From assembly GCA_964036045.1 (NCBI GenBank), contig OZ038378.1, positions 165,974,001-166,038,000 on the forward strand: a stretch of DNA of 64,000 nucleotides, read 5' to 3'. Positions within the stretch are counted from its first letter, which is position 1, and each line of letters starts with the position of its first letter. Made by a program: the position numbers and the translations under genes. The notes beneath the pieces are model-generated. The model saw nothing but the letters and a program-made list of their open reading frames with translations. It was not told where the DNA came from and did not search any database. Shown one piece after another: positions 7,709-64,000 of the stretch. This DNA comes from Eutreptiella sp. 'Long Island Sound 2002' (taxonomy: Eukaryota > Protista > Euglenida).

Positions 7709-7729
7709 GATGAAATGAAGCAGAGGCGT

Positions 7730-9040: not shown

Positions 9041-9052
9041 CTGCAGAGGCCC

Positions 9053-13150: not shown

Positions 13151-13735
13151 CTAATGCGTCCAGCCACCCGGCCGCTTTCTCGCCCGCGGAGACGGCGTGC
13201 TCTCCAGCTCCACAGACATGCGCGAGTACTTCGAGACCCCCGAGGCCAACGAACGGATGGAACCAATGGACCTCAGCGACGCCTCTGAGCGGATCGTGTG
13301 GACGGAGTCCACCGGCGTGAGCCCCATATGCCTCGAGGCCTTGGTGCTGTGGCTGAAGCGAGTGCTGTGGCTGTACCGGGTGGCGGCGCTGCTGGCACGG
13401 GATGGCTGGCGCTGGTACTCCCGGTGATCTCCGTGGGCGGCCGGCAGGGAAGTCCGTGCCCGTCCAAACATCCGCGTGGCCTGGTTCAGGGCCACGATGC
13501 CGTAGGCCTTGCGCCAGTTGCTGAGCCTTTCAGGGGAGGGCATGGCGCCGGACTGCGGCACGAAGGGGTTAATTTCTTTGTCCGAGACCAGGTTCAGGGC
13601 TCGCAGGGACTGCCTAGCCCAGGAGCGCCACGTGAACGTAATGGGGCTGGTTATTCGTTTCACAGGCAGCTGCTGCAGGCGCGCTTCGGTGCTGGCCTCG
13701 ATGCTTCGGCCGAATTCAGGGTATCGCTGCAGGAC
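13151..13735 (-). CDS. CNBD ion channel, exon 7 (terminal; C-helix and tail)
   Basis: Acceptor CCCCTTCAG|GTC. It joins exon 6 in phase 0 as FNK|[13 protein letters not shown]. Stop TAG at 13151-13153. Confidence 0.85.
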
Positions 13736-13757
13736 CTGAAGGGGGGATTCAGGCATC

Positions 13758-13912
13758 TGTTGTCTGTCTGTCTGTGTGTCTGTCTGTGTGTCTGTCTGTC
13801 TGTCTGTCTGTCTGTGTGTCTGTCTGTGTGTCTGTCTGTTTGTGTGTCTGTCTGTCTGTGTGTCTGTCTGTCTGTCTGTGTGTCTGTCTGTCTGTGTGTC
13901 TGTCTGTCTGTG

Positions 13913-13951
<39 letters not shown>

Positions 13952-13952
13952 G

Positions 13953-13999
<47 letters not shown>

Positions 14000-14124
14000 G
14001 TGTCTGTCTGTGTGTCTGTCTGTCTGTCTGTCTGTGTGTCTGTCTGTCTGTGTGTCTGTCTGTCTGTGTGTCTGTCTGTCTGTCTGTCTGTGTGTCTGTC
14101 TGTCTGTGTGTCTGTCTGTCTGTG

Positions 14125-14203
<79 letters not shown>

Positions 14204-14236
14204 GTGTCTGTCTGTCTGTCTGTCTGTGTGTCTGTG

Positions 14237-14275
<39 letters not shown>

Positions 14276-14320
14276 GTGTCTGCCTGTCTGTCTGTCTGTC
14301 TGTCTGTGTGTCTGTCTGTG

Positions 14321-14375
<55 letters not shown>

Positions 14376-14440
14376 GTGTCTGTCTGTCTGTGTGTCTGTC
14401 TGTCTGTGTGTCTGTCTGTCTGTGTGTCTGTCTGTCTGTG

Positions 14441-14479
<39 letters not shown>

Positions 14480-14480
14480 G

Positions 14481-14527
<47 letters not shown>

Positions 14528-14652
14528 GTGTCTGTCTGTGTGTCTGTCTGTCTGTCTGTCTGTGTGTCTGTCTGTCTGTGTGTCTGTCTGTCTGTGTGTC
14601 TGTCTGTCTGTCTGTCTGTGTGTCTGTCTGTCTGTGTGTCTGTCTGTCTGTG

Positions 14653-14751
<99 letters not shown>

Positions 14752-14752
14752 G

Positions 14753-14807
<55 letters not shown>

Positions 14808-14808
14808 G

Positions 14809-14867
<59 letters not shown>

Positions 14868-15012
14868 GTGCCTGTCTGTCTGTCTGTGTGTCTGTCTGTC
14901 TGTCTGTCTGTGTGTCTGTCTGTCTGTCTGTCTGTGTGTCTGTCTGTCTGTGTGTCTGTCTGTGTGTCTGTCTGTCTGTCTGTCTGTGTGTCTGTCTGTC
15001 TGTGTGTCTGTG

Positions 15013-15043
<31 letters not shown>

Positions 15044-15080
15044 GTGTCTGTCTGTCTGTGTGTCTGTCTGTCTGTGTGTG

Positions 15081-15127
<47 letters not shown>

Positions 15128-15128
15128 G

Positions 15129-15159
<31 letters not shown>

Positions 15160-15196
15160 GTGTCTGTCTGTCTGTCTGTCTGTCTGTGTGTCTGTG

Positions 15197-15265
<69 letters not shown>

Positions 15266-15284
15266 TTGTGTCTGTCTGTCTGTG

Positions 15285-15333
<49 letters not shown>

Positions 15334-15372
15334 TTGTGTCTGTCTGTCTGTTTGTTTGTCTGTTTGTCTGTC
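13758..15372 (+). repeat. About 1.6-kb (TGTC)n microsatellite with TG interruptions, in intron 6 of the channel gene
   Basis: Directly visible tetranucleotide run. Confidence 0.98.
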
Positions 15373-15619
15373 CCTCTGTGTTTGTGTGTGCCGAAGGCGC
15401 TGTTACCGAAAGGCAATGGCCGGAATGTTGTACCCACAGAAAAAAGTCGATGGGTGGGCACTGTACCTGAAACCCCAGACCAGGCAGGGGCAGCAGGGGC
15501 TGGGGGGACCTTGCCATACGGGCTTGACATAGGCACAGCCACAGGTCAATTGAGAGCAGCCCTTGGCACCCCTTGCCTCTGCGCCTGTTGGTGGAGTGCC
15601 CGCATCCTTCCCAGCACCC

Positions 15620-16250
15620 GTCCCCCGTCAGCGGTCGTCAACATGGCAACTAGACACTTCCACTGGATCATGGAGCTCAATATTCACGTGGACATGGCCA
15701 ACACAGACTATCCGGGGGTCATGGATCCTCCAGCGCCTCTTCTCTTTCATCCTCCCCAAAAAGTACAAGGAACATTGCCAGCTAGCCACAACGATGTACA
15801 CCACTGGTCGCAAGACCAAGTGGATCCCAGTGCAGGTGCACCACAACAGCCGGCGGGGCGACAATCACAAATCGGGAATGGGGCTCTTGCTACACTATTT
15901 TGATTGGGACCAGGAATGCAATGCCACGTTCCACCGCCGACACCACCTGCAACCTGCCCAAGATGACCCTGCTGGCAAAGAAGGCAGCAAAAAGACATAT
16001 GCTCTTGGACACCACCTGCCTCCCTTGCAAGGCCCTTCCATCCACCAGGCGCATATGGAGACCTCTGAGCCGTAAACACTATGGGAAACGAATTTGTGTG
16101 CCAGATGCTGGACGATTGGATGCGGCTGTGAAGAGCCCATGCATGGGGCCATTCAAGGCCGGCACAGCCCCCAAGGCACCATGGCATGGGTGCTCTAGGA
16201 GCTGCGGCTACTTGTGGTTGATACCATCCCAGCAATGCCCTCCCAGCCAG
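15620..16250 (+). mobile_element. Possible highly decayed non-LTR (LINE-like) reverse-transcriptase fragment
   Basis: Frameshifted strings [19 protein letters not shown]...TTMYT and [15 protein letters not shown] loosely follow the LINE RT order D-x2-KAFD / L..GFP...LY / GVRQGD. The similarity is weak. Confidence 0.25.
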
Positions 16251-40829: not shown

Positions 40830-40864
40830 TTCGTGGCCGTGTGCCACCAAATCAACCCAACCCT

Positions 40865-42454
40865 ATGCAAGCCGATGAGCAATTGCAAACGCTGCTTCAA
40901 AAGTTCCTCGAAGCGAATAATGAAAGCCGTGTGGCCGCCGAGAAGCACATCACCAAAATTTTAAAGCAGAAAGAATGCGTGGAAGCTCTTCTGAAGCAAA
41001 TCGCTTACTCGTCATATCCGGGAGTGCGACAATTAGCTTCAATTTTGCTGCGGAAGAAAATTAGTCTCCATTGGCGAAAGCTTGCTGCCATCGAACAGCA
41101 AGCAACGCAAGAAGTACTATTGTCTCGGTTATTAGAAGAGCCCGAGAGGCTAGTGCGCACCGCCGTGGCTCACTTGATTTCCGTCGTGGGCAAATTGACG
41201 ATTCCGAACGGGAAATGGGATGGGTTGCTTCCTTTCCTTTTGCAATGCACCAAGAGTGAAAATCCCAATCATCGAGAAATCGCGATGATTTTGTTGTACG
41301 CCCTCACCGACACTGTGGAGGAGCAAATGAGACCTCATCTCCAAAATTTGGTGGAGGTGTTCTTAGGAGGTCTTGCCGATGCTCACCTCGCCGTGAGGAC
41401 TGCCACATTACGTGCTGTGGTTCCAGCCGTGGGTTTTGTCACGGAGGAAGCGGAGTTAGAAGTGTATATGAAGTTGCTACAACCAATCATGGATGTCATG
41501 AGACAATGCATCCAAGCACAACATGAGACTGAAGATGAGCAATACTTGGATGTGGTATTATTAGTCACAGAGGTGTTCGATGATTTGGCCAGCATTGATT
41601 TGGAGGGGATTGCGAAGTATCTTCCCATTATGTTGGAGTTCATGGTTGGGGTCGCTGCGAACACCAATGCGCACGTCGTCATCCGTGAGCGTGCCACGTC
41701 CTTCTTGGGGGATGTGATCGGGGAACGGCCGACCGCGATCGTCAAGCGAAATTTGTTCGAACCGGTCTTGCAGCTTGCGTTGACGATTCTGTCCGAGCAA
41801 TACGAGCAAGATTTGTTTGATAATGACCAATTCGACGACGACGACGAAAACAATGCGTCCCCTTTGCAATTTGCATCCCAATTGTTGGATGAAATGTCGT
41901 CTTCATTGCCCAATAATCGGGTGTACCCGCTCTGCTTTGGTTGGTGCAAAGAGCAAATATTGGGTGGCAAAGGAGGGCCAAACACCATCAAGGCGGCCAT
42001 TTTGGCAATTAGTTTGATTTGTAAGGGATGCCGCGATCCCATGCGCAAAGATCTAGATGTGGTGTTGGAAATGGTGGATCGATGCCTCAAAGCGCCTCAA
42101 CCACCGGTACGTGAGACGGCGTGCATCGCAGTCAGCCAAATTCTTGAGTACTTACAGCCAGAAATTTTGGACAAGTATGACGTATTTCTGCCACAAGTTT
42201 TCAAGACATTGGACGATCCGTCTCCGAGAGTCCGGCAGAAGTGTGTGTATGCATTGGAGCACGTTGCCGAAAATCTCGGGGACGAAATCAAGCCCTATTT
42301 GCCACAATTGATGGAGAAGCTAATGCGGCTACTAAATGAAGGGGAGATGAAAACGCAACAAATTTGCATTTCTAGCATAAGCGCAATCGTGGAGGGGGCC
42401 GGCTGTGAAGCATTTGAACCGTATTACCAACACGTTTTGGGAGTGATGAAGCAG
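40865..42454 (+). CDS. IPO4: Importin-4 (Kap123-like importin-beta family), exon 1
   Basis: IBN_N-like start (RVAAEKHI...VRQLASILLRKKISLHW) followed by HEAT repeats (VRETACIAVSQ, VRQKCVYALE). Donor CAG|GTTCTC, 1590 nt. Confidence 0.85.
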
Positions 42455-42979
42455 GTTCTCCCCTTGCCAGTTTGTTTTTGCTTCAACGGGCCACTGCTTT
42501 GGGATCGGAAGGTGGTACAAAGAGCTGCTAAAGTCACATCGTAGCATTGCAGTGCATTTCTCCTTGCGGTGCTCTCCGGCAATTGGCCTGTGCTCGCACC
42601 GTAAATCCTCATTGACCCTCCGTTGCCCATTATTGGAATCCATATTCTACTCCCCTGAAACAGCATTTTTTCTTTTCGCGGTAAGGACACCCGTGCTGCA
42701 TGCTCTTGGGTCTAGCATTCCAGGGGAACGTTGCCACGCATTCGGGACACGCCCCAACGAGATTCTGACAGTGTCCCGACGACCCTTGCACACCCCAACA
42801 ACGTACATGTTGGGGCCAAAGCGGGTGCCCATGCCCCACGCCGCATTCTCCTCATTCAAAGAGGACGAGAGCAGGCTTGCGTAGCGTTCTCTAACCGACC
42901 CCAAGAGACGGGGTGCCTGTTGTTCGAAGATGGATGTATGTGGGCCGAAGTGACCCGCCAACATTCCTTCCTTGTTCAG

Positions 42980-46751: not shown

Positions 46752-47180
<429 letters not shown>

Positions 47181-47837
47181 TTGTCTGCCTAGAGGGGCAT
47201 TCCGCTTCGCTTCACAGGTGGACAATTTCAACGCTGATGGACCGATGGACACAGGTGTGTTTCCTTTTTTTTTTTTTTTTTTCAAAAAAAAACAAAACAA
47301 ACAAAGAAATGGACAAACGGTAAAACACAGGGTTAGCCACCAACCAAATGTTTGAGCACAGAAACAGGCGATTTAAAATGGATGATTTCAAAAACGAAAA
47401 AACAAGAAAAGATAAACAAAACGCAAAGGGCCATTTTCAGCCCCACACCCCACCCCGGCATGGACGTTCACCCCACGCCATTTTTAACCAAAACCCTTTT
47501 ATGTAATTACATCTGTTTACCACCCCCCTGCTTGAGGGGTCCGTTGTCACGGGGGGCTACTAGTCTTGCCCTGCGATGCAATGCGGGACAACTGTGACAA
47601 CGGGCCCCGCTGGTGGCGTCTTGGGGTTAGGGTAGCGAAGCTTGCCCCCGGCGGTGACTTGTACTGGGTTACAGCGCCATACGGCGTACCTACCTGAAAT
47701 TTTTGGGATGACGCTGTGGCCTGCTAAGTAGTTCCAATATCCATGCATGCATCGGGCAAAAAGGAAAACACAATGGGTGGGGCATGTGTGGGGCATGCCT
47801 AGTGCAGTGCAATACACACGTGGCCGACAAGATGGAG

Positions 47838-48199: not shown

Positions 48200-51100
48200 G
48201 AGGGTTTCAGTGCCTTTTTGCAGCCTTTGAGCAGCAGGTTTTTTGCCTGCCATAGGGCAGCATGTCGCTTTGCTCCCACAACATACCATGTTTTTAGCGG
48301 TCACTGAGAAGCAATATTTTTCGCTGCAACTGAGTGGCATGCTGTTTTGCTGCCACAGAGTGTCAGGCTTTTTTGCAGCAACAGAGTAGCATGCTCTTTT
48401 GTTGCTACAGCGCAGCAGGCTTTTTGCTGCCCCAGAGCAGTGTGTCCTACTGCTGCCACTGAGCAGCAGGCCTATTAGCAGCACTGAGGAGTAGTCTCCT
48501 GGCTACCATTAAGCAGCAGAGTTTTTTTTTGCTGCCACTGAGCAATAGGCTTTTTTGTGGTCACTGAGCAGCGGAGTTTTTTTACTGCCACAGAACAGCA
48601 GGATTTTTACTGCCAAAGAGTGGTAGGCCTTCTTGCTGCCACCAAGAGGCGTGCCCTTTTTGCTGCCACTGAGCAATGTTTAGTTGTTGCCGCTAAGTAG
48701 CATGCCTTTTTGCTGCTACTGAGCGTCAAGTTTTTTTGCTGCCACTGAGTGACAGTTTTTTGACTACCACGGAGCAGCCTGTCGTTTTATTGGCACCAAA
48801 CACTGCAGCCTTTTTGCTGTCACTACGCAGCACGCTTTCTGCTGCCACGGAGCAGTGTGTCAATTGGCTGCCACCGAGCGGCGTGCTTTCTAGCAGCATC
48901 AAAGTAGCAGGATTTTTGCTGCCACTGGGTGGCAGGCCTTTTTTGCTGCCACTGAGCGGCATGTAGGGGTAACCACAGAGTGCAGGCCTTTTTGCTGCAA
49001 CTGGGTAGCAGGCCCTTTTCCTAGCGCTGAGCAGCAGGCTTTTTTGCTCTCAAAACCGTCAATAGTTGTAATTACGCAGCAAGCTATATGCTGCCAAGGA
49101 GCAGCAGGTGTTTTAGCTGCCGCGGAGTGGTGAAGCAACGTGCTGTCACAGAGTAGCAGGTTTTTTGCTGCCACAGAGTGGTGCAGCTTTGTGCTACCAC
49201 GGAGCAGCAGGTTTTTAGCTGCCACAGTGCAGCGGACTCTACAGCTACCATGCAACAGAGCAGCAGGGTTTTGGCAGCCACTGTGCGGCTGGATTTTGCA
49301 GCCACTGAGTAGCAGGTGTTTTCCTGTCACACTGTAGCACCAGTAGTACCAGTTTTTGTTGCGACTGAGCAGCAAGCTACTTGCTACTACTGAGCGAAAA
49401 GCTTTCTGCGGCCACTGAACACAAGTTTTTTTTTTACTGCCGCTAAGCAGCATGCTTTCCAGCTGCCACAGAACAGAGGTATTTCTAGGCGGCCACTAAG
49501 CAGAGGGACTTGAGCGGCCATGGAGGAGCGAGCATTTTTTGCTGCAGTTGGGGGTTTCTAGCAGCCACAAAACAGATGGCTTTTTTGAGGCCCCTGACAG
49601 GCAGGCTTCTTAGCAACCTCGGGATGCCAGGCCTTTTGTGGCCACAGAGCAGCAAGGTTTTTGGCTGTCACGAAACAACAAGCTTTTTTACAGCCAATGG
49701 GCAGCAGGACCATTGTGGTTGTAGAGCCGGCCCTAGGTCCGCTGGGGGACTAGTACCCAGAGTAGGGGTGCAAAGGAGGCAGCCCAAGGTCCACTGGGGG
49801 ACTAGTACCCAGAGTTGGGGCGTGACTGAGACGGCCCTAGGTCCACTGGGGGACAAGTACCCAGAGTTGGGGCGCGACCGAGACGGCCCAAGGTCCACTG
49901 GGGGACGAGTACCAAGAGTTGGGGCGCAACTGAGACGGCCCTAGGTCCACTGGGGGACTAGTACCCAGAGTTGGGGCGCGACTAAGACGGCCCTAGGTCC
50001 ACTGGGGGACTAGTACCCAGAGTTGGGGCGCGACTGAGACGGCCCTAGGTCCACTGGGGGACAAGTACCCAGAGTTGGGGCGCCACTGAGACGGCCCTAG
50101 GTCCACTGGGGGACAAGTACCCAGAGTTGGGGCGCGAATGAGACGGCCCTAGGTCCAATGGGGGACGAGTACCAAGAGTTGGGGCGTGACTGAGACGGCC
50201 CTAGGTCCACTGGGGGACGGGTACCTAGAGTTGGGGCGCGACTGAGACGGCCCTAGGTCCGCTGGGGGACGAGTACCCAGGGCGCGACTGAGACGGCCCT
50301 AGGTCCACTGGGGGACTAGTACCCAGAGTTGGGGCACGATTGAGACGGCCCTAGGTCCGCTGGGGGACTAGTACCCAGAGTTGGGGCGCGACAGAGGCAG
50401 CCCTAGGTCCACTAGGGGACTAGTACCCAGAGTTGGGGCGCGACTAAGACGGCCCTAGGTCCACTGGGGGACGATTACCCAGAATGGGGTACGGTTGGGA
50501 CGGCCCTGGGTCCACTGGGGGACTAATACCCAGAATTGGGGCGAGACAGAGCAGCAATTTTTGCGCTGCCACAGAGCGTCGTGTGTTTTGTGTTGCCGTA
50601 GTGAACGTATTTTAGTTCTGCCACACAGTAGCGTGTGGTGTGGGCTGCTACAGAGCAGCAGATTTTGACTGTTGCCATGGTGCAACGCTTTTTTAGTTTG
50701 TTTTTGTGTTTGTGCTATAATATTGTTTTTGGTGACTCTGTTTCTTGTGCGGCATTTTTTTTTTGTGCTATCACAATGCCGCATTTTCCATGTACAACCA
50801 CAGTGCAGTGTGCAGTTTTTCAGTTTCTGCTGCCTCAGTGCGGCATGTTTTTTCAGTGCTGCCACGGTGCAGTGTGTGTTTTTTGTGCAGCCAGAGGGCG
50901 GCATGTTTGGGCTTTTTGCTTTGTGCTGCCTCAGTGCAGCATGTTTTTTGTGTGCTGCCGCAGGGCATGGTTTTTTGTTGTTCTTGTTTTTTGATTTCTG
51001 TGCTACCACAGGGCAGCATGGTTTTTGTGCCGCCGCAGTGCAGCGTGTTTTTTGTCCAGCTGCAGCTGCAGTGCTGCAGTATTTTTTGTTTTTTTTTTGC

Positions 51101-54100
51101 AATGAGCGATGAGGGTTTTTTTGTTGTTGTTGTTTGTATTTGTTTTTTGTGATGCCACATTGTTTTGGGCCCACCATTTCTAGTTCCGCGAGTGTCTAGT
51201 GCTGCCCCAGTGCAGCGCATTTGTTGTGCTGCTACAATGTAGCATATTATGGTGTTGCAATGCAGCGTGTTATGGGTGTTGCCACAGTGCATCAATTTTT
51301 TTTTGGTTTTTGTTTTTTCTGCTACCAAAGCGCGGTGTGTTTTTGTGCTGTTGCAATGCAGCGGTTTGTATGATGCCACATTGCAGCGGGCTTTTGGTTC
51401 TGCCGCGGTACAGCATGTTTTTTTGTTGGTGTTGCCACAATCCAGCTTGTTTTTGTGATGCCGCAGTGCAGCGTGTTTTGTGTGCTGCCACACTGCGGCA
51501 TCAAATTTTGTGCTGCCATGGCACAGCTTTTTTATGTAGCTGCCATAGTGCAGCATGAAATTGTGTGCTGCCACGGTGCAGCGCTTATTGCTGTGCTGCC
51601 ATAGTGCGGCTTGTTTCGTGCAATGGTGCGGTGCTGCATGTTCTTTGTGTTGTCATAGTGCTGGGTATTTGTGTGCTGCCACAGGGCAGCGTGTTTTTTT
51701 GTTCTGCCACAGTACAGCATTGTTTTTTTTGTTTTGTTAGTGCGGCCACGGTGCAGCTGTTTATCTTCCTTGTGTTTTCTGCTGCCGCAGTGCAGCGTAT
51801 TTTTTGTGTTGCCACCGTGCAGCTTGTTTTTGTGCTGCCGCACTGCGGCATGGTATTTGGCGCTGCCACAGTGCAGTGTTTTTTGTGTTGCTGCCTATTT
51901 TTGTGCTTCCACTGTGCTGTGTGTTTTTTGAGCTGCCGCAGGGCAGCGTGTTATTTGTGCTGCCAAAGTGCAGCCAGTGTTTTGTGCTGCTGCAATGCTG
52001 TTTTTCTTTCTTTCTTTCTTTGGCTGCTACAGTGCCACAACAATCGGGACCAAATGGTGTCATGGGCCCATTGGGAGCCCAATACCCCAGGTGCAGGTGG
52101 GGGTGCGGCTGGGATGCACCCCAAGTCCACTGGGGGACAGGTACCCAGACTTGGGGTGCAACAGGGACACACCCTAGGTCCGCTGGGGGACGAGTACCCA
52201 GAGTAGGGGTGTGACAGCCACAAAGTAGTATGCCCTTTAGCCGCCACGGAGCATGCGGCTTTTTTGTAGCGACATGGTGGCATGCCTTTTTTGCGGCCAC
52301 TGAGTAGCCGTCCTTTTAGCTATCGCTGATCGCTGATCGTTGGGCCTTATAGCTGCCACTGAGCAGTATGCTTGTTTGTAGCCATTGGCTTTTAGGCAGC
52401 CACGGATCATGGTTTTTTGCTGGCGCAGCGGGCTTTTTTGTTGCCGCGGCGGCATGCCCTTTGCAGCCACTACTCAGCGAGCTTTTTGCTGCCGTTGAGC
52501 ACCAAGGTTTTTGCTGCCACGAGGTAGCTGGCTTTAAGCGGCCACTGAGCAGCAAGCTATTGCTGAGCAGCAGGTTTTTTAGCAGCCACTGCGCGTGGGC
52601 CTCTTTGCTACCACTGAGTAGCAGGCCGTTATGCAGCCACCGGGCACCAGCCTTTTAAGCTGCATAGAGCAGCGGCGTCCGTTGCTATCATAGGGCAGCA
52701 GGGTATTTTGCTACCATTGAGCAGCAGGATTTTTGCAGCTTAAAAGTAACAGGGTTTTTGCGACCATTGAGTTGCAGGCCTTCTTGCTGCCACTGAGCGC
52801 CAGCCTTTTTTGATGCATGGAGCAATGGGGTCTTTTGCTGCCATAGGGCAGCAGGGTTTTTTGTTGCCGCAGAGCAACGGGGCTTTTTGCTTCTTCTAAG
52901 CAGCTGGGTTTTTTGACTGCCAGTGAGCTTCTGACCCTTTTGCAGCCATAGAGCAGGAGAATTTTTGCTGCCATTGAGCAGTGGGCCTTTTCGCGGCCAC
53001 TGGGCAGCATGCCTTTTTGATGCCACTGAGCAACAAGTCTTTAATTTGCAGCTACGTAACAAGCTCCTTTGCTGTCACCGGGCAACAAGCCTCTTTGCTG
53101 CACCAAGGTAGCATGCTTTTATGCTGCCACCGAGCCATGGGCCTTATTGTTGCCACAGAGCAGCATGTCCAATTACTACCACAGATCGCCAAAAATTTCT
53201 GCTGTTCTGAGCCACAGAGCCATAGAGCAGCAGGGTTTTTCTTAGCTGCCGCAGCACAATGGGCCTTTGTGCTGCCAATGAGCAGGAGGGTTTTTGCTGC
53301 CGCAGAGCACCAGGCCATATTGCTGCCACACACTGGCGGCGTTTTTCGCTGCCATTTAGCGGCAGGCTTTTTTGCTGCCCTAGGGCAGGTTTTGTTTTTC
53401 CTCAGTCACTGAGCAGCAAGCTTTTTCACAGCAACTGAGTAGCATGCTCTTTTGCTGCCACTGAGCGGCAGGCTTTTTAGCTTCAACTGAGTAGCATGCT
53501 CTTCTGCTGCCACTGAACAGCAGGCCTTTTTGCTGCAACAGAGTAGCATGCTCTTGTGCTGCCGCTGATTGGTAGGTTTTTATGGGCACTGGGCAAGAGG
53601 CCTTTTTCGCTACCACAGTGCGGCAGACCTTTTTGCTGCCATGAGCAGCAGAACAATTTTTGATTTCTTTTATTTTTTATTTTAATTTTTTTTTTGCTGC
53701 CACCGAGCAGCATGTCCCTTTGCAGCCACTGAGCACCAGGCCATTGTGCTTCACTCGGCAGCGTGCTGTTTTGCTACCGTTGGGCAGCGGGGTTTTTTGT
53801 TTGCTGCCACTGAGCAACAGGCCTTTTTTGCAGCCACTTAGCAGCAGGTTTTTGCGTACCAGAGAGCAATATGTCGTTTTGCTGCCATTGTACCCCATGC
53901 TTTTTTGCCGTCACAGAGCACCCATTCTTTTGCTGCAACTGCGTGGCATGCTGTTTTGCTGCCACTGGGCAACAAGCTCTTTTGCTGCAACTGAGCAGCG
54001 TGCTTTTTTGCTCCCACGGCGTGCTTTTTTGCTCCCACAGCGTGTCAGGCCTTTAGTGCAACCACGTGGCATGCTCATTTGCTGCCACTAAGCAACAGGG

Positions 54101-57100
54101 CTTTTGCGGGCATAAGCAGGGGGCTTTTTGCTACCACACAGCAGATGGATCCTTTGCTGCCACAGAGCAGCATGTCTCTTTGCTGCCACTGAGCGCCAGG
54201 CTTTTTTGCGGCAAGTGAGGAGCATGCTCTTTTGCTGCCACAGAGTGTCAGGCTTTTTAGCAGCAACTGTGTGGCATGCTCTTTTGCCGCCACTGAGCTG
54301 CGAGCTTTTTTCCTGCCGCAGAGCAGCGAGTCCTTTTGCTGCCACCGAGCAGCAGGCCTGTTTGCTGCACCGAGGAGCGGTCTCCTTAGCTACCATTGAA
54401 CAGAAGGTCCTTTTTTTGCCGCCACTGAGCAACGGGCCTTTTTGCGGCCACTGAGAAGCGGAGTTTTTTACTGCCACAGAGCAGCGTGTTTTTTGCTGCC
54501 AAGGAGCGGTGGGCTTTCTTGCTGCCACGACGAGGCATGTTTTTTGGCTGCCACTGATCAACAGGCTTTGTTGTTGCCACTAAGTAGCATGCCTTTTTGC
54601 TGCTACTGAGCGTCAGGTTTTTTTGCTGCCACTGAGTGGCAGTTTTTTGCCTACCACAGAGCAGCATGTCGTTTTGCTGCCGCTAAACACCGCGCCTTTT
54701 TTGCTGTCACTACGCAGCACGCTTTTTGATGCCACAGAGCATCTTGTCCTTTGGCTGCCATTGAGTGGCAGGCCTTTTTTGTTGCCATTGAGCATGCTCT
54801 TGTGTTGCCACTGAGCGCAAGCCTTTTTGCTGCAGATGTTTGTAGCAGGTGTTTTCCTGTCACTGTGTAGCCAGTTTTTGCTGTGACTGAGCGGCACGCT
54901 GCTTGCTACCACTGAGCAATAGGCTTTTTGCTGCCACTGAACGCAAGCTTTTTGGCTGCCGCTGAGCAGCATGCTTTCCTGCAGCCATAGAATAGAGGGC
55001 CTTTTGGCGGCCGCTACCCAGTGGGATTTTTGCGGCCACGGAGCAGCGGGCATTTTTGCTGCCACTCAAAAGCAAGCTTTTTGCTGCCGCCGGGGCTTTC
55101 TTGCAGCCACAGATCGGCAAGCTTCTTGGCAACTTCAGTGCGCCGGGCCCTTTGGTGCCACTGAGCAACATGTTTTTTTGCTGTCACGAAACAACATGCT
55201 TTTTTGCAGCCAATGGGCAGCGGGCCCTTTGCTGTCACAGGGCAGCGGGCCTTTCTTTTTTCTTTTTTCTTGTTTATGTAGCCACTCAACAGAGGGGCTT
55301 TTTGCTGCCGCAGAGCAGCGTGTTTTTAGCCTAGCTGAACCGCGGGCCTTTTTGCCGTTGGGTAGCAGCCCTTTTTGCTGCCACTGAGCAGCAGGCTCCT
55401 TTGCTGCCATAGGGAGGCTCGCTCCATTGCTGCCGCTGACCAGAGTACCCTTTAGCTGCACTAGGTAGCACGGTTTTTCGCTGCCACTGAGCAGCAAGCT
55501 TTTTTGCAGCTATTGGGCGGCAGGGTCTTTAGGTGCCACATAGCAAGGCAGTAGGGTGTTTTGCAACCATCGAGCGGCAAGCTTTTTGGTAGCCGCTGTG
55601 CAGCACGATGATTTGTAGCCACTGAGTACCGCGCTTTTTTGCGACAACCAACAGTGGGCCTTGTTGCTGCCACTGAGCAGCAGGACCTTTAGTAGCGGCT
55701 GAGCAACAGGTCTGTGTGCTACCGGTAAATTGCAGGCTTTTTTGCGACCAAGGACTAGCGAACCGTTTAGCTGCCACCAAGTGGCAGGTCTTGTTGCTGC
55801 CACTGAGCGGCATACCTTATAGTGGCCACTAGCTTTTTGGCAGCCACGCAGCTGCACGGCTCTTTGCCGCCCAAGAACCACAGGCTTTTAGTAGGTTTTC
55901 TGGAGCGGCGGGCTTTTTGCTGCCGCAGAGGAGCAAGCCCTCGTGCTACCACAGAGTGGCAATTTTTTTTTTGCTGCCACAGAGTAGCAGGTTTTGGCAG
56001 CCAAAGGGTGGCATGTCCTTTGGCTACCGCTGAGCGGCAGGGTCTTTTGCATTGAATGGTAAGCTTAGTAGTTGCCACTAGGCAGCGTGCATTTTTGCCG
56101 CCACCGAGCAACAGGTTTTAGCTGCCACTGGGCAGCCTGCCTTTCTGCTGCCACTTAGCAGCAGGGACTTTTATTGCCATAGAGCGGCAAGCTTTTTAGC
56201 AGCCATTGGGCAGCAGTCTGTTTTTGCTGTCACCTAGCAGTGTGTTTTTATTTGCTGCCACCGAGCTGCGAGTTTTTGCAGCCACTGAGCGGCATGCCTT
56301 TCTGAAGCGACTGGCCAGCAGGGTCTTTTGCAGCTATTGAGCGACAAGCTTTTTAGTTGCCGTTGAGCAGCACGCTTTTTAGGTGCCACTGGGGAGCGGA
56401 TCTTTTTGTGGTCACCTGGCAGTGTGCTTTTTTGCTGCCACTGAGCAGCAGGTTTTGCAGCCACCAAGCACAAGGTTATGCGGCCACAGAGCGGTGTGTC
56501 CTTTTGCTACAGGTGTGCACGAGGCTTTTTTAGCTATCACTAGGTTAGGGCTTTTCTTTAGTTTTTGTTGCAGCAGGGCTTTTTGCTGTAAGTAAGCGTA
56601 AGTAAGCGGTGTGCTTTTTTTGGTGCCGTTGAAAAGCATGCTTTACTGCTGCCGCTGAGCAGCATGCCATGCGGCGGCCACAGCACAGCACACCACAGAG
56701 TGGCAAGTTTTTAGCTGCCAGTAAGAAGCAAACTTATTGGCTGCCGCTCAGCAACAGGTCTTTTTGCTGCCATTGAGCAGCGTGCCTTTTTGCTGCCACT
56801 GAGCAGCAAGCTTTTTCGTTGCCAATGAGTAGCAGGTCTTTTTGCTGCCACTGAGCAGTGTACTTTTTGACAGCAAGCCTTTTTTGCTCCCGATGGGCCG
56901 CAAGCTTTTTAGCAGTGGCGGAGTCGCGTGTTTTTGCTGCCACTCAGCTGCATGCCTTTAGCTACCACCGCGCGGCGTGTCTTTTTGCTGCCGCTGAGCA
57001 GCATGCTAAATAGCTGCCACTAAGCAGCAGGCTTTTCAGCCGCCACTAAGTGGCAGGCTTTTTGCTGCCACAGAGCATCAGGGATTTTTGTTGCGGCTGC

Positions 57101-58500
57101 GCAGCACCCTTTTTAGCAGCCGCAAAGTCGCAAGTTTTTGCTACCACTGAGCAGCATGCCTCTCTGCTACCGATGAGCAGCGTGCTTTCTAGCTGCCACT
57201 GCGCTGCAAGCTTTTTAGCTGCCACTGAGCGGCATGCCTTTTTGCTGCCACTGAGTAACAGATCCTTTGTTGCTGCTGTGCAACGTGCCTTATCACTGCC
57301 ACTGGGTGGCAGCAGGCCCTGCTGCAGTTGCGCCGCAGCATGCCTTTCTACTGCCACTGGGCAGCAGGGGCTTTTGCTGCCACTGAGCGGCAATTCGTTT
57401 GGATACCAGTGAGCGGCAAGCGTTTTAGCTGCCATAGAGCAGCAAGCTCGTTAGCTGCCACTAAGTGGCAAGCTTTTCTGTTGCCATTGAGCAGCATACC
57501 TTTTTGCTGCAGCTCCGCAGCATGCTTTTTTGCTACCACTGAGTAGCGAGGTTTTTGACTGCTGCTAAGCGGCACTTTTTTTAGCAGTCACTGAGTAGCG
57601 GGCTTCCTTGCTGCTACTTTTTTTTGGCCGACACTGAGCACCAGGCTTTTTTGCTTTCACCTAGCGGTGTGCAGTTTGCTGCCACTGAGCAGGTTGGGGG
57701 TTGCCAGTGAGCACCAGCTTAAATGGCCACAGGGCAACATGTCCTTTTGCAGCCGGTGTGCAGCAGGCCTCATGATGGCGCTAAGCTGCAGGCTTTTTGG
57801 TGCCTCTAGCCAGCTAGTTTTTTGCAGTCACTAAGCAGCATGCTTTTTCGCTGCCACTGAGCAGCACGGCTTTCTGCTGCCACAGAGGAGCATGCCTTTC
57901 TGCTGCCATTGAGTAGTAGGGGCCTTTGTTGGAACTGAGTGGCAAATTGTTTAGCGACCGTTGAGCAGCAAACTTTTTAGCAGCCACTGGGCAGCAGGTC
58001 TTTTGTTGCCACTGCGCATCAAGCTTGTTAGCGGCCACTGAGTGGCAGGGTTTTTTGCAGCCACTGGGCAACATGCCTTTGTGCAGCCGCAGAGCAACAG
58101 GCGCTTTAGCCGTCTCTAAGTAGCTAGTTTTTGCTGCCACTGAGCGGCATGCCTTTTTGTTGCCGCTGAGCTGTATGCCTTTTTGCAGCCGCTGAGCAGC
58201 GCGTTTTTTAGCTGCCATCGAGCAGCAAGCTTTTTTGCAGCCACTGAGCGGCAGGCCTCTTTGCTGCCGCTGGACACGGTGCCTACTTGCTGCCCCTGAG
58301 CAGCAGGTTTTTGTAGACACTGAGCAGCGGGTTTTTTGTAAGCACTGAGCAGTGGGCTTTTTTCCTGCTCTTCAGCAGCACCCCTTTGTGCTGCTGCTGA
58401 GCAACAGAGGCTTGGATGCCACTGAACGGCGGCGGTCGCTTTTGCCGCCACAGGGCACCGTGGTGCAGTGCAGCAGGTTTCCTACTGCTGCAGTGCTGCG
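48200..58500 (+). repeat. About 10.3-kb degenerate satellite of roughly 25-27-bp units (TTTTTGCTGCCACTGAGCAGCAGGC); a TG-richer variant occupies 50560-52030
   Basis: Continuous recurrence of GCTGCCAC/CTGAGCAGC with oligo-T spacers, all in one orientation. Confidence 0.93.
49729..50543 (+). repeat. 52-bp minisatellite, about 15 copies (GGCCCTAGGTCCACTGGGGGACTAGTACCCAGAGTTGGGGCGCGACTGAGAC); 2-3 more copies at about 52060-52210
   Basis: Unit starts at 49833, 49885 and 49937 give a 52-bp period. Confidence 0.93.
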
Positions 58501-58847: not shown

Positions 58848-58867
58848 CAACAACAACAACAACAACA

Positions 58868-58904
<37 letters not shown>
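58848..58904 (+). repeat. (CAA)n(TG)n microsatellite abutting the apparent 5' end of the Penelope-like element
   Basis: Directly visible. Confidence 0.9.
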
Positions 58905-58906
<2 letters not shown>

Positions 58907-59348
58907 CGGGTGGTTACACCCGTCTCCAGCTAAGTACCTCCAGAGTAGACATGTAAGTAGCGCTGCGGTTTTCAATAGATCATACAATCATTGGCTAGAC
59001 AGGGCCAGACAGTGGGCAGGGTCTGTGGTGATCAGCGCACAATGCACTGTGAGAACAAACTCCTCTTCACCGTCACCCCTGTCGCAGAAAGGACCTTGCC
59101 TACCTTTTTGTTAATGGCCTGATGAAATTGTCTCGGTGACCAGTGCTCTGCCTTCGCTTGCTTTCGTCTTCACTGACGTTGTGCCCCGCGTTTGGTCCCC
59201 ACTGGTTTTCCCGCACGAAGTGTGTGGTCTGCTGTTGGCACGCCCCCCAGTGTCCGTTCGGCAGTTTGCGTTTTGTTGAAGACATCTCCACGCTTGGCGC
59301 TGCTTCGTCTACTCCACTAATCTCGTTTCTGTATCCTCCGACCCTCTC

Positions 59349-60754
59349 ATGGCCGACCCCCCTATTATCTGCCGCCGATGTCACAAAGGCGGGCACCATG
59401 CCTCTGCCTGTCCAGAAGCTAGCACCGGCAATCGCTCGGAGTGAGGAGGCCGCGGCCCCCCACCATCAAAGTGTTGGACCTGTGAGCTGATCGATGGCGC
59501 TGATGCAAACCACTGGGGAGATGAGTGTCCAGTAGCCGCACAGCGACTGAAGGATCGCCAATGCACCCTATGTGGTTCGCCAGACCACTGGAAAAAAGGA
59601 TGCCCCAGATACGAAGCAGACAAACATAAGGCCCGCAACCCCACAACCACCTACTGGCCCACCGGTCCCAAGCGATCAGCAATCTCATGGTGCCTGCGCT
59701 ACGGAGTCAAAGGGGAACACCCCACAATGGATTGCACAGCCGCCGGTCCCCCAATCATCTGTCTGACGCCTCCGATGCCGACGATCTGCAGGATGTCTGC
59801 CTCTGGTGCTCCATTAAAGGCCACTCCCATCAATCCTGCATGCGCCGAGCTCCAATCCAGGCAAAAGAAAATGCTACAGCTATTGCGGGTCTAACAGATC
59901 GCGTGGATGCCCTACAAAAATCCGTCACAGACTGCAATGCCTTGTCAAGAAAAGTGTCCACATTGGAGGGACATATGTCCAGCTTAATGACCTGGAAGTC
60001 AGCTACAGAGGGCCGCTTGACGGTTTTGGAGTCCTGGCAGTCCTCTGCCAACAATAAATTCGTCGCCCGGTCCAGCTTTGATGCATTCGTGGAAGAAAAA
60101 TTCACCCCGACGCAACGACAGGCCGCTACAGCAGTAGCAATATCGACCTTCGATGAATTTGTCAACACGCGCTTCCTCCCAACTGAACAACAGGCCTCGG
60201 CATCTCTTCCAACGGAATCGTTCAACGACTATGTCATGAGAATGGAACATGCGGGGTTCAAACCAGCTGACGAGGACACACCAATGTCAACGGCACGGCT
60301 CACGGGCGCCCCACGCATGGCTTCGGAGTCGCAGGAGATCGGTAGCCCAGGGCAAACGGCAAAGGAAAGAGCGGCAAAGCGTGCCCACACTCCGTCTGGC
60401 GCCGGCGGTGCAAGCTCCTCGTCTTCAGTGTTCGCCACGCCGGCCTCCCGTATGCAAGCAGGGGCAGCTGCGTTTGGTGGAGTCTCACCTCCGAGTGCGC
60501 CGTGGCTAGCGCTGAAACCTACAGAAAGCTCTCAGTGGTCAGACGACGCCCTTGACCTGCTATTTAGCGAATGGACAGCCCATATGGACTCCAGATTGCA
60601 GCAGTGCGCGTCGAAGCATCTCCAGGGTGAAATGAAGAGCACGGTGGAAACCCTGGCCCGTGATACGTGGTCACCGGAGAAGAAGCGTGGCATCTCTGCA
60701 GTGTTGACAACATCTCGAGTTCCAGTGCGCCTGTTCACCAATTTAAATCGGTAG
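59349..60754 (+). pseudogene. ORF1 of the element: five zinc-knuckle-like motifs plus coiled coil (about 468 codons; one TGA at 59442 and one frameshift near 59750 in this copy)
   Basis: CRRCHKGGHHASAC (59370), CWTCELIDGADANHWGDEC (59472), CTLCGSPDHWKKGC (59562), CLRYGVKGEHPTMDC (59691) and CLWCSIKGHSHQSC (59798), then heptad-like IAGLTDRVDALQKSVTDCNALSRKVSTLEGHMSSL. Confidence 0.8.
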
Positions 60755-63700
60755 GGGAGGGGGGAGATCATTTTCTGTTTCGGGCGTCCTCACCCCCGCA
60801 GACATGCAATGAGGGCCCCCCCGTAGACAGTTTGGTCAGCACCATGCTCTCCCTCCAGTGGATACGGCAAAAAATGGGTCTTGCCTCTTACATAGTCCAG
60901 CAAACATCAGAGTTCGTCTCCCATCTGGACACCCACGCATATTATCCGATGGACATGACACACACCGGTGATCCAATCCACAACACACGTAACCGTATCA
61001 ACGCCCTATCCCATTGTGACTCCCAAAGCAGTGAGCGTGCCTTATGTGACAAACGACACACCGACAACGTAGCCGGACAGTGGGCACATGCTTCGCCTCC
61101 GCCCCCCCTGCAGGCACAACCATTCAGAGATATACAGTGTTCCAAGGTGCCTGGGTGGGTTTTCCGCAGAGTATGCCACACCCTCTCCGCGGTCAGTGGA
61201 TGGTCCACACCACACGGGTGGCTTACAGCATGTCACATCCAATGGGACAATCCAGCGACACGGCTGATACACTCCTCCTCCTCCCCCCACGTCCTGACAT
61301 CTTGGGACGAATGCAGCTCCGTACTCCCTCTGCCCTCCCCCCTCCCTGACCCCCTGCAACACCTGTGGATTTGGGCCCCAGCATCTGAGGTCCCAGCGGT
61401 GCAATACCACTTCCCCCAAATGTCCACTGTGGGTTGGTTCAGGACTTCACAGCCCATTCACCTCATGACCTCGTCCAGTGCCCTGGATGCATGTGACAGC
61501 ATCCAAATACACCGTCTGCACCTGTTGTTGTCGCATGAAGGATCGAGCCTCTTGGTCCACCAACCCCCACCTCAGAGCACCAATGTCCTCAGAGCTTTAC
61601 GTATCCAGATGTCACGAGCCCTGTCGGATAAAAATCTTGGTAGATGGGCAGCACTCCACCAACGAAGGATATCCTACCTCCCGTACAACACGCATGCAGC
61701 GCTCAGGATGGCTCGCAGGTTGAGCCACGTCCACGTCTGGTACACTCATGTAACACCCCCCCAGTACGCAGTATACTTAGTATTCCATATATATCTCCAC
61801 CTTGTGTATGTGGGCGTCACAAGCAAAGCACTGATCGTTCGCCTCCGGAAACACCAAACAGACGCGTCGAGTTTCCAAGATTGCTCTACACTCCACCGAT
61901 TAATGTTGCAAACGGACAGTGCCCACTCGGGGATCATCCCCTTGCAATTCATGAGTGATGAGTGGTACGCCAGCGTCAGGGAGCGACACTGGTAGTTTGT
62001 GTTCAAAAAATGGGCCTGAAACGATGTTGCGCCAGGCATTAGCACCGAGGGGCAAGGGTCGGGACCACGGGGATGGCCGAACCAACGAGTCCTGCAAGTC
62101 CTGCACAGCATGAAAGAGGCCCGACAGATAAAGGATTTCCCGCGACTTAAATTTCTGCAGCAGGACCTTCACAGTCTGGCCTCGCAGATGAGTGTACCAC
62201 TGTACTCCGTAGGCAGTATCATCGTCCCGAATCTGCAGCCATCTCAGAAAAGTGCTATTCACAGAGTCACCCGAAAAATGATTGCTTCTGTTGCCAGCCC
62301 CGCATGGGAAAAACAGGCCCTGGCTAAGGCCATACGGGTCGTCCGCAGTAGCCCTGTAAACGTCCGCCGCGTTTTTGAGCAACACGCTCGGCGATTCGAT
62401 AAGTTAGGCGACCAGCCCCCATGCAAGTGTCTCACAGCACCAAAATTCCCGGGGGTCTCCACAGTCATCGATGGACACATAGCGTACACACCACTGTGGG
62501 TGCCTACCTGAGACACCTATGCCCGTCCCAACGACCCCCTACCCCTCAGCGGCTCCTCCGTCCGCTCCCACCTCCTCTCTGACCTGAAAAAGATGGCGGA
62601 TCAAATCGGTGCATGTCTTCCACCCCTCGAACTCATGCTCCCAGACTCCCTGTGGCCAGAGACGGGCCACAAGCTTACGCAAGTCAGGAAATTTGCCAAG
62701 TCGGTCTGTCAGTCCCACTATGTCCGCATCGTCGACAAGGGGGTGGGAGTCCTATGGGCATTCTGCCGCCACTGGGTATGGGGCATCATCCAACAGTTCC
62801 TGAAGAGCGAAGGCTACACCCCGTCCCCTAAAACGTTGCCCCAAGCCATGGCCTTCGTCTCTGCAGAGCTCGACGCCAGAGGCTGGGACCGCAACACAGC
62901 CGGTCAACTTCCCCTCCTCTATCTCCTGGGCAAATTCAAATCACTGGCTAAGGGTAAATGGCTCTGGCGCGGCATTACCTCCCTCCCCCAACCCCTGCTA
63001 CCCAAAAAATCGCTGCGCATCGCCGCACGGGCCAACACAGCCTTCCTCCGACTCCTGTGCCAAGAAGTCCCCTGCTGTTTTCTAGCTCAGAGCATCTCAG
63101 AAGTAAGCCAATGGTTCCACTGGTTAGACACGATAAACGCCCGGTTCATTAGTGAGGTGGATTGCAAGGACCAATTCAATAATATATGCCCCACAGACAT
63201 AGAATCGCACCTGACGGCAGCCAGCAAGTGGCTCGCCAAACGCCGCAAGTGGCGCATGACAGATATTGAGTGGTCCATTCACAAAGACTCCAAAATGCTC
63301 GACAGAGCGGGACGGGCAAAAGCAACGAAATTCTGGTACATCACCCACGCCCAAATGTCAGACACAATCACGTTTGAAATGCACTGCAATAACTTCATCA
63401 GAGCAGTGGGAGGGTTATGGTGCCGCCACGGTTGCATTCCAATGGGCGGTTCTTTTTCAGCCCAGGCAGCCGATCTGCACAACCTATGGCAGGTATATTC
63501 AAATCGCCACCTCCTGCGCCGCCTAGGCTCCCTCACTGTTTCCGAGGCAGGGTTCCCCTACTGGGAGTCCCCGCAGGGGATAACCGCCCTATGTCAATTT
63601 AGAGACAACATCCTGATTGCCACCACCAACCCAGACACCACCTCCCACCCCATCGTCTCTACAGTGTGTAACCTGCTTGGCGAGGCATGGAACCTGGATG

Positions 63701-64000
63701 TGCTCTGTGAGTGTATGTCGGGGCCAGGGGACCCCTGCAAACATCACTGCCACTCAGCGTCCACCACAGCCCTCGGCTTTGACATGATTCGGGGGGAAAC
63801 GGGTAAAGGACTAGCGTACCTACACCCCAGCGCGCTCTCATCAACCTGGAGTTTGAAGAGTGCACCCCCCCTCCTGTCCCCTGCAAGCGCCTATCCCGCT
63901 TACCTGCCGGGTATCATGACGGGCGCTTTGAGCAATGCACGCCCTTGGGCCACGACATGGGCAGGGGAGCTGCTGTCCCTCTCTGCTTGGTTACAGATAG
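60742..64000 (+). pseudogene. ORF2 of the element (about 340-aa unknown N-region, GIY-YIG, CxC, RT); one reading frame with three in-frame stops
   Basis: Hand translation of frame +1 shows no frameshift up to the window end. Stops occur only at 61993 (TAG), 62017 (TGA) and 62509 (TGA). The supplied ORF track misses 62512-64000 because that segment has no stop inside the window. Confidence 0.85.

Follow-up and report, generated by a model that had tools for sequence, protein, structure and literature searches.

Among transposons, Penelope-like elements (PLEs) are the nearest relatives of telomerase; their Naiad/Chlamys branch was described only in 2021. In particular, the Chlamys PLEs of green algae, Selaginella and Physarum are 3.3-8.2 kb long and carry an endonuclease (EN) that lacks the CCHH or CX2-5CxxC fingers and keeps its R, H, E and N residues, a CxC motif and a long insertion in fingers domain (IFD); they have pseudo-long terminal repeats (pLTRs) or partial tandems, 5′ truncations and (CA)n or (C)n targets, and mostly no hammerhead ribozyme (HHR) (Craig et al. 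2021, PMC8557442). The CxC motif is diagnostic of Naiad/Chlamys and the DKG motif of PLEs, and in one Chlamys-type PLE, Chlamys-2_cBra of Chara braunii, a gag-like zf-CCHC peptide is specified by an upstream open reading frame (ORF) (Craig et al. 2021, PMC8557442). Here, a 64,000-nucleotide stretch of contig OZ038378.1 (assembly GCA_964036045.1), called the window throughout, was analyzed at its 3′ end, where positions 58890-64000 probably cover about 80% of a single dead copy of an autonomous retrotransposon, Penelope-like and with its endonuclease at the N-terminus (Naiad/Chlamys type), a reading that we hold at a probability of roughly 0.8.

The complete unit of the element comprises about 6.0 kb plus a 337-bp terminal repeat. 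The window copy is an inactive pseudogene, cut by the window end, because intact relatives have Arg at the position of the stop in the first ORF (ORF1) and Trp, Cys and Ser at the stops in the second (ORF2). All testable defining features of PLEs with an N-terminal EN, and of Chlamys in particular, are present, and there is good support for regarding the element as a new lineage within a known kind, rather than as a new kind of element. The initial annotation had proposed a Penelope-like retroelement with the permuted Naiad/Chlamys layout, and this identification is borne out by an N-terminal GIY-YIG domain without CCHH, a CxC motif, a DKG motif, a reverse transcriptase (RT) with a long insertion between motifs A and B, and a modeled RT fold closest to telomerase reverse transcriptase (TERT). 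Its further description of a two-ORF element stands for the motif layout and fails for the reading frames, both of which are broken in the window.

Organization of ORF2

The intact ORF2 protein contains, in order, an N-terminal region, a GIY-YIG-like domain, the CxC motif, the DKG motif, a TERT-like RT in which motifs A and B are separated by a long insertion, and finally a C-terminal extension. Using the intact protein P0202 (1237 aa) as a tblastn query, its residues 1-1111 align to window positions 60667-63999 with 96.7% identity, in a frame that opens at 60664, overlaps the end of ORF1 by 88 nt in the -1 frame, and is cut off at 64000 by the window end with about 126 codons still to come. 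The frame is interrupted by three stops: TAG at 61993 (Trp in relatives), TGA at 62017 (Cys) and TGA at 62509 (Ser). Its first Met, at 60844, is mostly conserved and is replaced by Ile in the intact copy B of locus L004. The predicted order of GIY-YIG, CxC and RT was recovered by pattern search, which places the three at 61765-61821, 62416 and 63154-63786 (Table 1). The TGA codons need not be read as selenocysteine, as they are in some Naiads; that possibility was rejected on account of the additional TAG and frameshift in this copy and of the Arg, Cys and Ser that its relatives carry at the TGA sites.

The EN region aligns without gaps across lineages, with invariant residues Y9, G22, R31, H35, E78 and N91 (A5 numbering) and with Y20 in at least 90% of sequences, a spacing that we take to match the catalytic residues of I-TevI. 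The Pfam GIY-YIG family (PF01541) is the recurrent top match, with an E-value of 0.011 for the window and matches in 11 of the 14 scanned members (best E 4.4e-4), 2/3 of the misses being N-terminally truncated; further, NCBIfam gives one weak match in the region, to a group I intron endonuclease (E 0.013). The residue pattern and these matches suggest a GIY-YIG fold. As anticipated, there is no CxxC between GIY and YIG; the window copy has no Cys there at all, and none is conserved at this place in the family alignment. The core likewise contains neither a Cys pair nor a CCHH finger, which is the Chlamys condition. Lectin matches of the EN core in the PDB search were discarded as spurious, as they summed weak repeats.

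Downstream, the CxC motif, DK(G), RT motifs A and B, the motif E-like segment, the FRDN form of motif C, and a cluster of four cysteines (Cys4) are conserved across the family. Motif B begins 91 aa after the motif A Asp, in agreement with the first estimate of about 90 aa, and the intervening insertion is IFD-like. An AlphaFold2 (AF2) model was calculated from the CxC motif to the C-terminus of an intact ORF2 with 42% identity (locus L001, 5334-8858), using a 147-sequence alignment that includes the window piece, and reached a mean predicted local distance difference test (pLDDT) score of 92.2 and a predicted template modeling score (pTM) of 0.89. In the model, the motif A Asp ends the strand 259-264, the R-D-N of motif C occupies the turn of the hairpin 403-409/412-417, and the A-B insertion folds as a helix, two strands, a helix and a hairpin, similar to an IFD. 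A Foldseek search of the PDB with this model returned TERT structures at all of ranks 1-18 (E 9e-11 to 2e-5), followed by a group II intron RT, first at 4e-5, and by Abi-P2, retron, DRT9, LINE-1 and R2 RTs and viral RNA-dependent RNA polymerases (RdRps).

Two characteristics may set this RT apart. In about 66 of 72 family sequences, motif C reads FRDN, an Asp-Asn pair and not the usual xxDD (residues 929-931 of the L001 ORF2), and a DD variant was not seen among the approximately 72 sequences, while the RT core is under strong purifying selection. Moreover, the Cys4 cluster, located between motifs C and E, may form a zinc site; we know of no counterpart in other RT palms.

A conserved gag-like ORF1

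ORF1 starts at ATG 59349 (MADPPIICRRCHK...), reads MADPPII...FTNLNR* and ends with the TAG at 60752-60754. Within the frame, intact relatives have Arg where the window copy has a TGA (59442-59444), and a 1-bp deletion near 59758 shifts the frame by one base, after which reading resumes to the terminal TAG; in addition, the second Cys of knuckle 4 is changed to Tyr in the window copy (CLRYG vs CLRCG). An ORF1 of about 470 codons with five zinc knuckles and a coiled coil had been expected from the sequence. The knuckles and a heptad-repeat segment are indeed found, a continuous ORF in the window is not, and the intact relatives have 467-468 aa. The longest ATG-initiated ORFs actually contained in this part of the window are 355 aa (59687-60754) and 442 aa (60667-61995).

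The knuckles give weak Pfam zf-CCHC matches and are kept in the aligned lineages, and the best PDB matches to the ORF1 profile are a Gag nucleocapsid of retroviral type (8pug, E 4.9e-4) and AIR2, a protein with five knuckles (E 3.6e-3). In four lineages, the best 42-aa heptad window falls at or near the region just after knuckle 5, with 0, 2, 3 and 93 of 1000 shuffles reaching the observed score in what is a crude test. Further downstream, the copies of the S-x-F-D/N-x-F/Y-V motif are retained in most aligned ORF1 lineages (2/3 in the L001 lineage and weakly in L006), and a C-terminal domain is defined by invariant columns and has no match in Pfam or PDB profile searches. Neither an RRM nor a capsid domain was detected in ORF1.

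In the window family, in the L002 subfamily (86% identical to it) and in the L001, L003, L006, L008 and L009 lineages, ORF2 is directly preceded by an ORF1 homologue, in each case with five knuckles, a heptad segment and a C-terminal domain ending in FTNLN, and in most with the S-x-F-D-x-F-V repeats. Moreover, ORF1 identity declines in parallel with ORF2 identity (about 58, 52, 42-45 and 35%, for lineages with both measured; the L003 ORF2 is excepted). Between two subfamilies, the ratio of non-synonymous to synonymous substitutions (dN/dS) is 0.095 for ORF1 (dS 0.71), 0.095 for ORF2 and 0.083 for the RT core, with dS values of about 0.6-0.7. Both ORFs are under strong purifying selection and are diverging together. 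An apparent second ORF1 in L002 (17131-18534, 467 aa) proved to be an RT fragment of another lineage.

Family size, terminal repeats and insertion target

A search with a 496-aa RT piece found 26 relatives in a 90%-clustered protein collection (E down to 0), nearly all from ENA, and 672 representative clusters at E ≤ 1e-3, 87 of them at ≤ 1e-30. Because these 26 close relatives and 672 clusters match the RT piece and intact copies exist, the layout is far beyond chance. The 90%-identity clusters of RT relatives hold 104, 65 and 35 members, and all relatives that were traced to a contig belong to ENA assembly ERZ25074135; the family has many copies in this one large eukaryotic assembly. The window's contig, as found in an ENA assembly, is 372 kb long. 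Its intact members there encode an ORF1 of 467-468 aa and an ORF2 of ~1237 aa, and intact copies are 96-97% identical to the window copy in DNA sequence. For example, locus L004 contains two full units with a period of 6019 bp, plus R (the terminal repeat), at 96.4-96.6% identity to the window copy; both units have an intact 468-aa ORF1 (8682-10088 and 14713-16119), and one has an intact 1237-aa ORF2.

The unique sequence of R starts with AGCGGGTGG at about 58905 and ends with GAAGTGTGTG at 59217-59226. By blastn, R recurs with 88-96% identity at L001 12820-13156, L002 14982-15322, L003 18514-18848, and L004 7255-7586 and 20271-20607. In five other insertions it follows the 3′ untranslated region, always ending at GAAGTGTGTG and continuing into (TG)n. 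Full-length copies begin with (TG)n and then R, and the junction internal to tandems is a short (TG)5. Truncation at the 5′ end is frequent among the insertions; three independent 5′-truncated copies, in L001, L003 and L004, break at positions corresponding to window 61464, 62224 and 62857, and each abuts (TG)n. Overall, (TG)n is found on both flanks of all window-family insertions, with the sense strand continuous with TG, and the L001, L005, L008 and L009 lineages are also bounded by sense-oriented TG runs. An Rfam search (E ≤ 1) gave no family at all, and an HHR core pattern no match, in the window or in a full unit.

Other loci show how such insertions are arranged. At L001, positions 2698-9392 hold an apparently intact element of a diverged lineage flanked by two (GT)n tracts, with an ORF1 of 494 aa and an ORF2 of 1174-1210 aa that ends ...CVCVSPR in a TG run; the downstream (GT)n tract holds a 5′-truncated copy of the window family, placing two lineages in one microsatellite. 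At L006 (5110-9964 and 13385-14653), the most diverged lineage (P0230) has an ORF1, and an unrelated RVT_1 gene is found at the same locus. Within the window itself, a (GT)215 microsatellite at 46752-47181 is another potential target of the family.

Alternative explanations

Several observations weigh against the assignment to the Naiad/Chlamys type. Every Pfam GIY-YIG match lies below the gathering score, the AF2 model of the EN region, calculated from a 14-sequence alignment, has a pLDDT of 48, and PDB sequence searches (phmmer and profiles) with the RT, the EN region and the EN core returned no RT or GIY-YIG chain. Similarly, the Pfam RVT families gave no match at E ≤ 1 in the window RT piece or in six intact ORF2s. 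The clade assignment is drawn from motifs, architecture and predicted fold, while purifying selection and recent copies are what suggest that an RT with FRDN is catalytically competent; the (UG)-pairing step in priming, the functions of the ORF1 protein and the mode of ORF2 translation, as presented below, are proposals. Further, no (TG)n run of six or more units is found near the element of the L006 lineage; given this lineage, the (TG)n preference may not hold for the whole group, and L006 may use another target.

One alternative is that the RT comes from a distinct TERT-related retroelement lineage, one that lies beyond the PLE clades described so far and gained an N-terminal GIY-YIG domain and a gag-like ORF1 independently, its likeness to Chlamys being partly convergent. 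The sequence is indeed very divergent, without a Pfam RVT_1 match at E ≤ 1 or a PDB profile match; FRDN motif C and the extra conserved Cys4 cluster after it point the same way, and searches of named sources gave unnamed proteins only. However, such an origin is unlikely when every testable Naiad/Chlamys diagnostic is present (CxC, DK(G), a long A-B insertion, and an EN without CCHH that has R, H, E and N), as are the pLTR/tandem structure, the 5′ truncations and the (CA/TG)n target, together with the lack of an HHR. Somewhat less probable still is that the FRDN RT is catalytically dead, with the family being non-autonomous and mobilized in trans, or domesticated for a function other than polymerization. 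Well-studied RTs require the second Asp of motif C, and no DD variant was seen among the approximately 72 family sequences; yet Asp-Asn variants of motif C are active in some viral RdRps, the low dN/dS of the RT core indicates strong purifying selection, motifs A and B and the first Asp of motif C are conserved, and many young copies carry hallmarks of target-primed reverse transcription, namely 5′ truncations and tandems.

The last alternative concerns ORF1, which could have come from another gag-bearing element that was inserted by chance upstream of ORF2 in the window copy, as the existence of copies without ORF1 might suggest (L001 9392-, L003 15829-, L004 5205- and L005). These copies are the 5′-truncated ones and are explained by truncation at (TG)n junctions, whereas every full-length copy has ORF1 within the R...R unit that also encloses ORF2, at the same distance from it in the window family, the L002 subfamily and five more diverged lineages. 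The initial annotation had named linkage within shared termini as the check, and a chance nested insertion as the outcome that would speak against it; the linkage is present and the nested insertion is not the case. With ORF1 divergence tracking that of ORF2 and the two dN/dS ratios being equal, the chance origin is already refuted for practical purposes. The upstream position of ORF1 in all full-length copies from six diverged lineages, together with purifying selection, shows that it is a genuine, conserved and selected component of the element and not a nested insertion.

Proposed mechanism

As a Penelope-like element of the N-terminal-EN type, the family could replicate as follows. The ORF1 protein would bind and chaperone the element RNA through its knuckles, multimerize through its heptad segment, and form a ribonucleoprotein with the ORF2 protein. 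The GIY-YIG domain would then nick the CA strand of a (TG/CA)n microsatellite, and the freed ...CACA-3′ end would pair with the GUGUGUG run ending R in the RNA and prime target-primed reverse transcription. Such pairing and priming on the (UG) run would account for the invariant 3′ boundary and the strict orientation of the insertions. Incomplete copying would give rise to 5′ truncations, and template jumping or read-through of tandem units would produce the tandems and the pLTR.

We considered and rejected a programmed -1 frameshift, conserved across lineages, as the link between ORF1 and ORF2. In the three lineages with ORF2 in the -1 frame, the two ORFs overlap by 88 nt, about 1 nt and 10 nt, which makes a conserved frameshift site unlikely, and the L006 gene calls are in a different relative frame. 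Translation of ORF2 by reinitiation, or by internal initiation at the Met of (T)MLSLQW, would be more likely; this Met is found in most lineages, with Ile in the intact copy L004 B.

Feature coordinates and surroundings

Table 1. Features of the element in the window and, in the last five rows, ORF1 homologues at other loci.
Feature	Position	Strand	Basis or comment
5′ flanking microsatellites, insertion target	(CAA)7 58848-58868; (TG)17 58871-58904	+	
Terminal repeat R (pLTR, 337 bp as matched)	58890..59226	+	blastn
ORF1 (gag-like), decayed	59349..60754	+	tblastn with intact P0029 (467 aa), two high-scoring segment pairs, 59349-59771 and 59750-60751
Five CCHC zinc knuckles	59370-59411; 59472-59528 (CX2CX9HX4C); 59562-59603; 59691-59735; 59798-59839	+	pattern search
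Heptad-repeat (coiled-coil-like) segment	59882..60040	+	heptad a/d hydrophobicity test
Three S-x-F-D/N-x-F/Y-V motifs in ORF1	60071-60103; 60143-60175; 60215-60247	+	alignment
ORF1 C-terminal domain (PWL...W..ALDLL..EW...R...W..H..E..T...FTNLN)	60500..60751	+	invariant columns, alignment A4
ORF2 (EN-RT polyprotein), decayed, cut by window end	60664..64000	+	tblastn with intact P0202
GIY-YIG-like endonuclease core, (A)VY...VYVG...RLRKH...ER.WW...W..ND	61765..62028	+	Pfam PF01541 sub-threshold and invariant residues
EN motifs	YAVYLVF 61765-61785; VYVGVT 61804-61821; RLRKH 61840-61854; VRERHW 61975-61992; WA*NDV 62011-62028	+	pattern search
CxC (PPCKC), EN-RT linker	62416..62430	+	both Cys invariant in alignment A3; 15/19 and 17/19 in alignment A2
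DKG motif in IVDKG (62728-62742), upstream of core RT	62734..62742	+	alignment A2: D 37/42, K 38/44, G 32/42
RT palm	63154..63786	+	alignment, pattern search, model of L001 homologue
RT motif A, EVDCKDQFN	63154-63180	+	Asp at 63160
IFD-like insertion	63181-63432	+	between motifs A and B
RT motif B, CIPMGGSFSAQ	63433-63465	+	
RT motif C, QFRDN	63595-63609	+	
Cys4 cluster, CxC-x6-C-x3-C, between RT motifs C and E	63706-63750; L001 ORF2 residues 964-977	+	58-62 of about 65 sequences
Motif E-like, ALGF	63769-63786	+	
L008 ORF1	2554-3976		54% identity to P0029
L009 ORF1	2478-3896		46.5% identity to P0029
L003 ORF1	P0031		46% identity to P0029
L001 ORF1	3745-5229		35% identity to P0029
L006 ORF1	5110-6384		28% identity to P0029

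Upstream of the element, a degenerate satellite of ~10 kb with a 26-bp unit (TTTTTTGCTGCCACTGAGCAGCAGGC, with the palindrome GCTGC...GCAGC) spans window positions 48291-58413, reaching the 5′ flank of the element, and generates long spurious ORFs on both strands. A 52-bp tandem repeat (16 copies, 87% matches) is located at 49724-50551, and a microsatellite-like array of ~1.9 kb with an 8/12-nt period and an AT skew of -0.67 is found at 13621-15540, with spurious ORFs of 560-790 aa. On the plus strand, an exon-like ORF at 40841-42544 encodes an importin-5/importin-beta-like HEAT protein (Pfam TPR_IPO5 7e-29, HEAT_EZ 6e-23, and IBN_N), which identifies the window as eukaryotic nuclear DNA. On the minus strand, positions 5723-7882 hold a 719-aa ORF with TPR repeats, a fragment of which is at least 90% identical on the 2.2-kb contig JAZHCK011861725.1 of GCA_044343465.1 (L007), a further and highly fragmented assembly from this species or one close to it. 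Several inverted repeat pairs of 80-180 nt with 82-87% complementarity (1144-1420 vs 3747-4045, and 3408-3589 vs 4206-4387) may be another repeat family or a foldback structure. An Rfam search of the window gave no match. For annotation of the window, the element is an ordinary dead transposon copy beside a satellite array.

The wider interest is moderate and lies with transposon specialists, for whom the RT with FRDN, the anchoring of the 3′ end in (TG)n and the conservation of a gag-like ORF1 are the relevant features. A large and recently active set, with at least six diverged lineages that include intact copies, in another eukaryote would widen the known distribution of Naiad/Chlamys, and the family would offer natural material on a gag-like ORF1 that works with a GIY-YIG/RT protein. 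Both the conserved Asp-Asn motif C and the clean microsatellite-primed 3′ junction are biochemically testable.

Comparison with known systems

Three groups of retroelements are not matched. Canonical PLEs with a C-terminal EN (Penelope/Poseidon, Neptune, Nematis and Hydra) have GIY-YIG with CCHH located C-terminal to the RT, no CxC, no IFD, and an HHR in the pLTR, whereas the present element has an N-terminal EN, a CxC motif, a long A-B insertion and no HHR. The gag-pol genes of long terminal repeat elements and retroviruses differ as well: Pfam found no protease, RNase H or integrase in six ORF2s and the RT is TERT-like, a primer-binding site and a polypurine tract not having been searched. 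An identity as a long interspersed nuclear element (LINE) is disfavored by the lack of an APE or RLE Pfam match in the ORF2s and by the position of the LINE-1 and R2 RTs at Foldseek ranks 26-50 (E ≥ 1.4e-4).

TERT is the best structural match to the RT (the top 18 in the PDB) and also has an insertion between motifs A and B; by analogy, the proposed priming, in which a short repeat 3′ end pairs with RNA, would resemble that of telomerase. It differs in being a single-copy cellular gene without EN or ORF1 and with a DD motif C, in contrast to the dispersed, truncated and tandem sequences found here. The ORF1 protein recalls the ORF1 proteins of non-LTR elements (the L1 coiled-coil and CCHC-knuckle types) and retroviral nucleocapsid in placing multimerization and zinc-knuckle binding upstream of an RT ORF, a similarity best regarded as functional analogy.

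Among PLEs, EN-deficient Athena-type elements have a separate coiled-coil ORF1 upstream of the RT ORF (Fig. 1 legend, PMC8557442), and the precedent that the initial annotation had named for coiled-coil ORF1s is drawn in this way there. However, they are without endonuclease and telomere-associated, and zinc knuckles in their ORF1 are unmentioned in that paper (PMC8557442). The Naiad PLEs of invertebrates share the permuted order of GIY-YIG, CxC and RT with IFD; they keep the CCHH and CX2-5CxxC fingers and have DKA, a (TA)n target and a single ORF (PMC8557442), none of which apply to the present element. The Chlamys PLEs are closer. All of the Chlamys features given at the outset are present in the window family, with (TG)n/(CA)n as the target and with R31, H35, E78 and N91 invariant. 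In contrast, Chlamys elements are mostly single-ORF, and their third DK(x) residue is not conserved, while it is mostly Gly in the present family (32/42).

Chlamys-2_cBra is similar in combining an N-terminal GIY-YIG PLE with an upstream gag-like zf-CCHC ORF. The initial annotation had taken such elements to be single-ORF and considered the combination possibly novel; this novelty is weakened because the upstream zf-CCHC ORF of Chlamys-2_cBra had already been described (PMC8557442). The two differ in that a canonical 3′ HHR is reported for Chlamys-2_cBra and none was found in the present element, and in their hosts, a streptophyte alga and a protist-like genome. Knuckle number and a coiled coil are absent from the text of the paper (PMC8557442). 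A literature search for Euglena or euglenids together with Penelope-like elements returned nothing relevant, which is absence of evidence only.

Four characteristics may be new, namely the host lineage, an ORF1 that is both elaborate and conserved, motif C in its FRDN form, and the Cys4 cluster. A bolder and tentative reading, which we consider possible and less probable than not, is that the family represents a deep branch of N-terminal-EN PLEs that had not been described before, with a protist host, possibly a euglenid, that lies beyond the known Chlamys taxa. This branch would be set apart from the described systems by an ancestral, co-evolving, gag-like ORF1 that combines five knuckles with a coiled coil and a novel C-terminal domain, by an active single-aspartate FRDN RT, and by 3′ ends fixed through pairing of (UG) RNA with nicked (CA)n, in a telomerase-like alignment.

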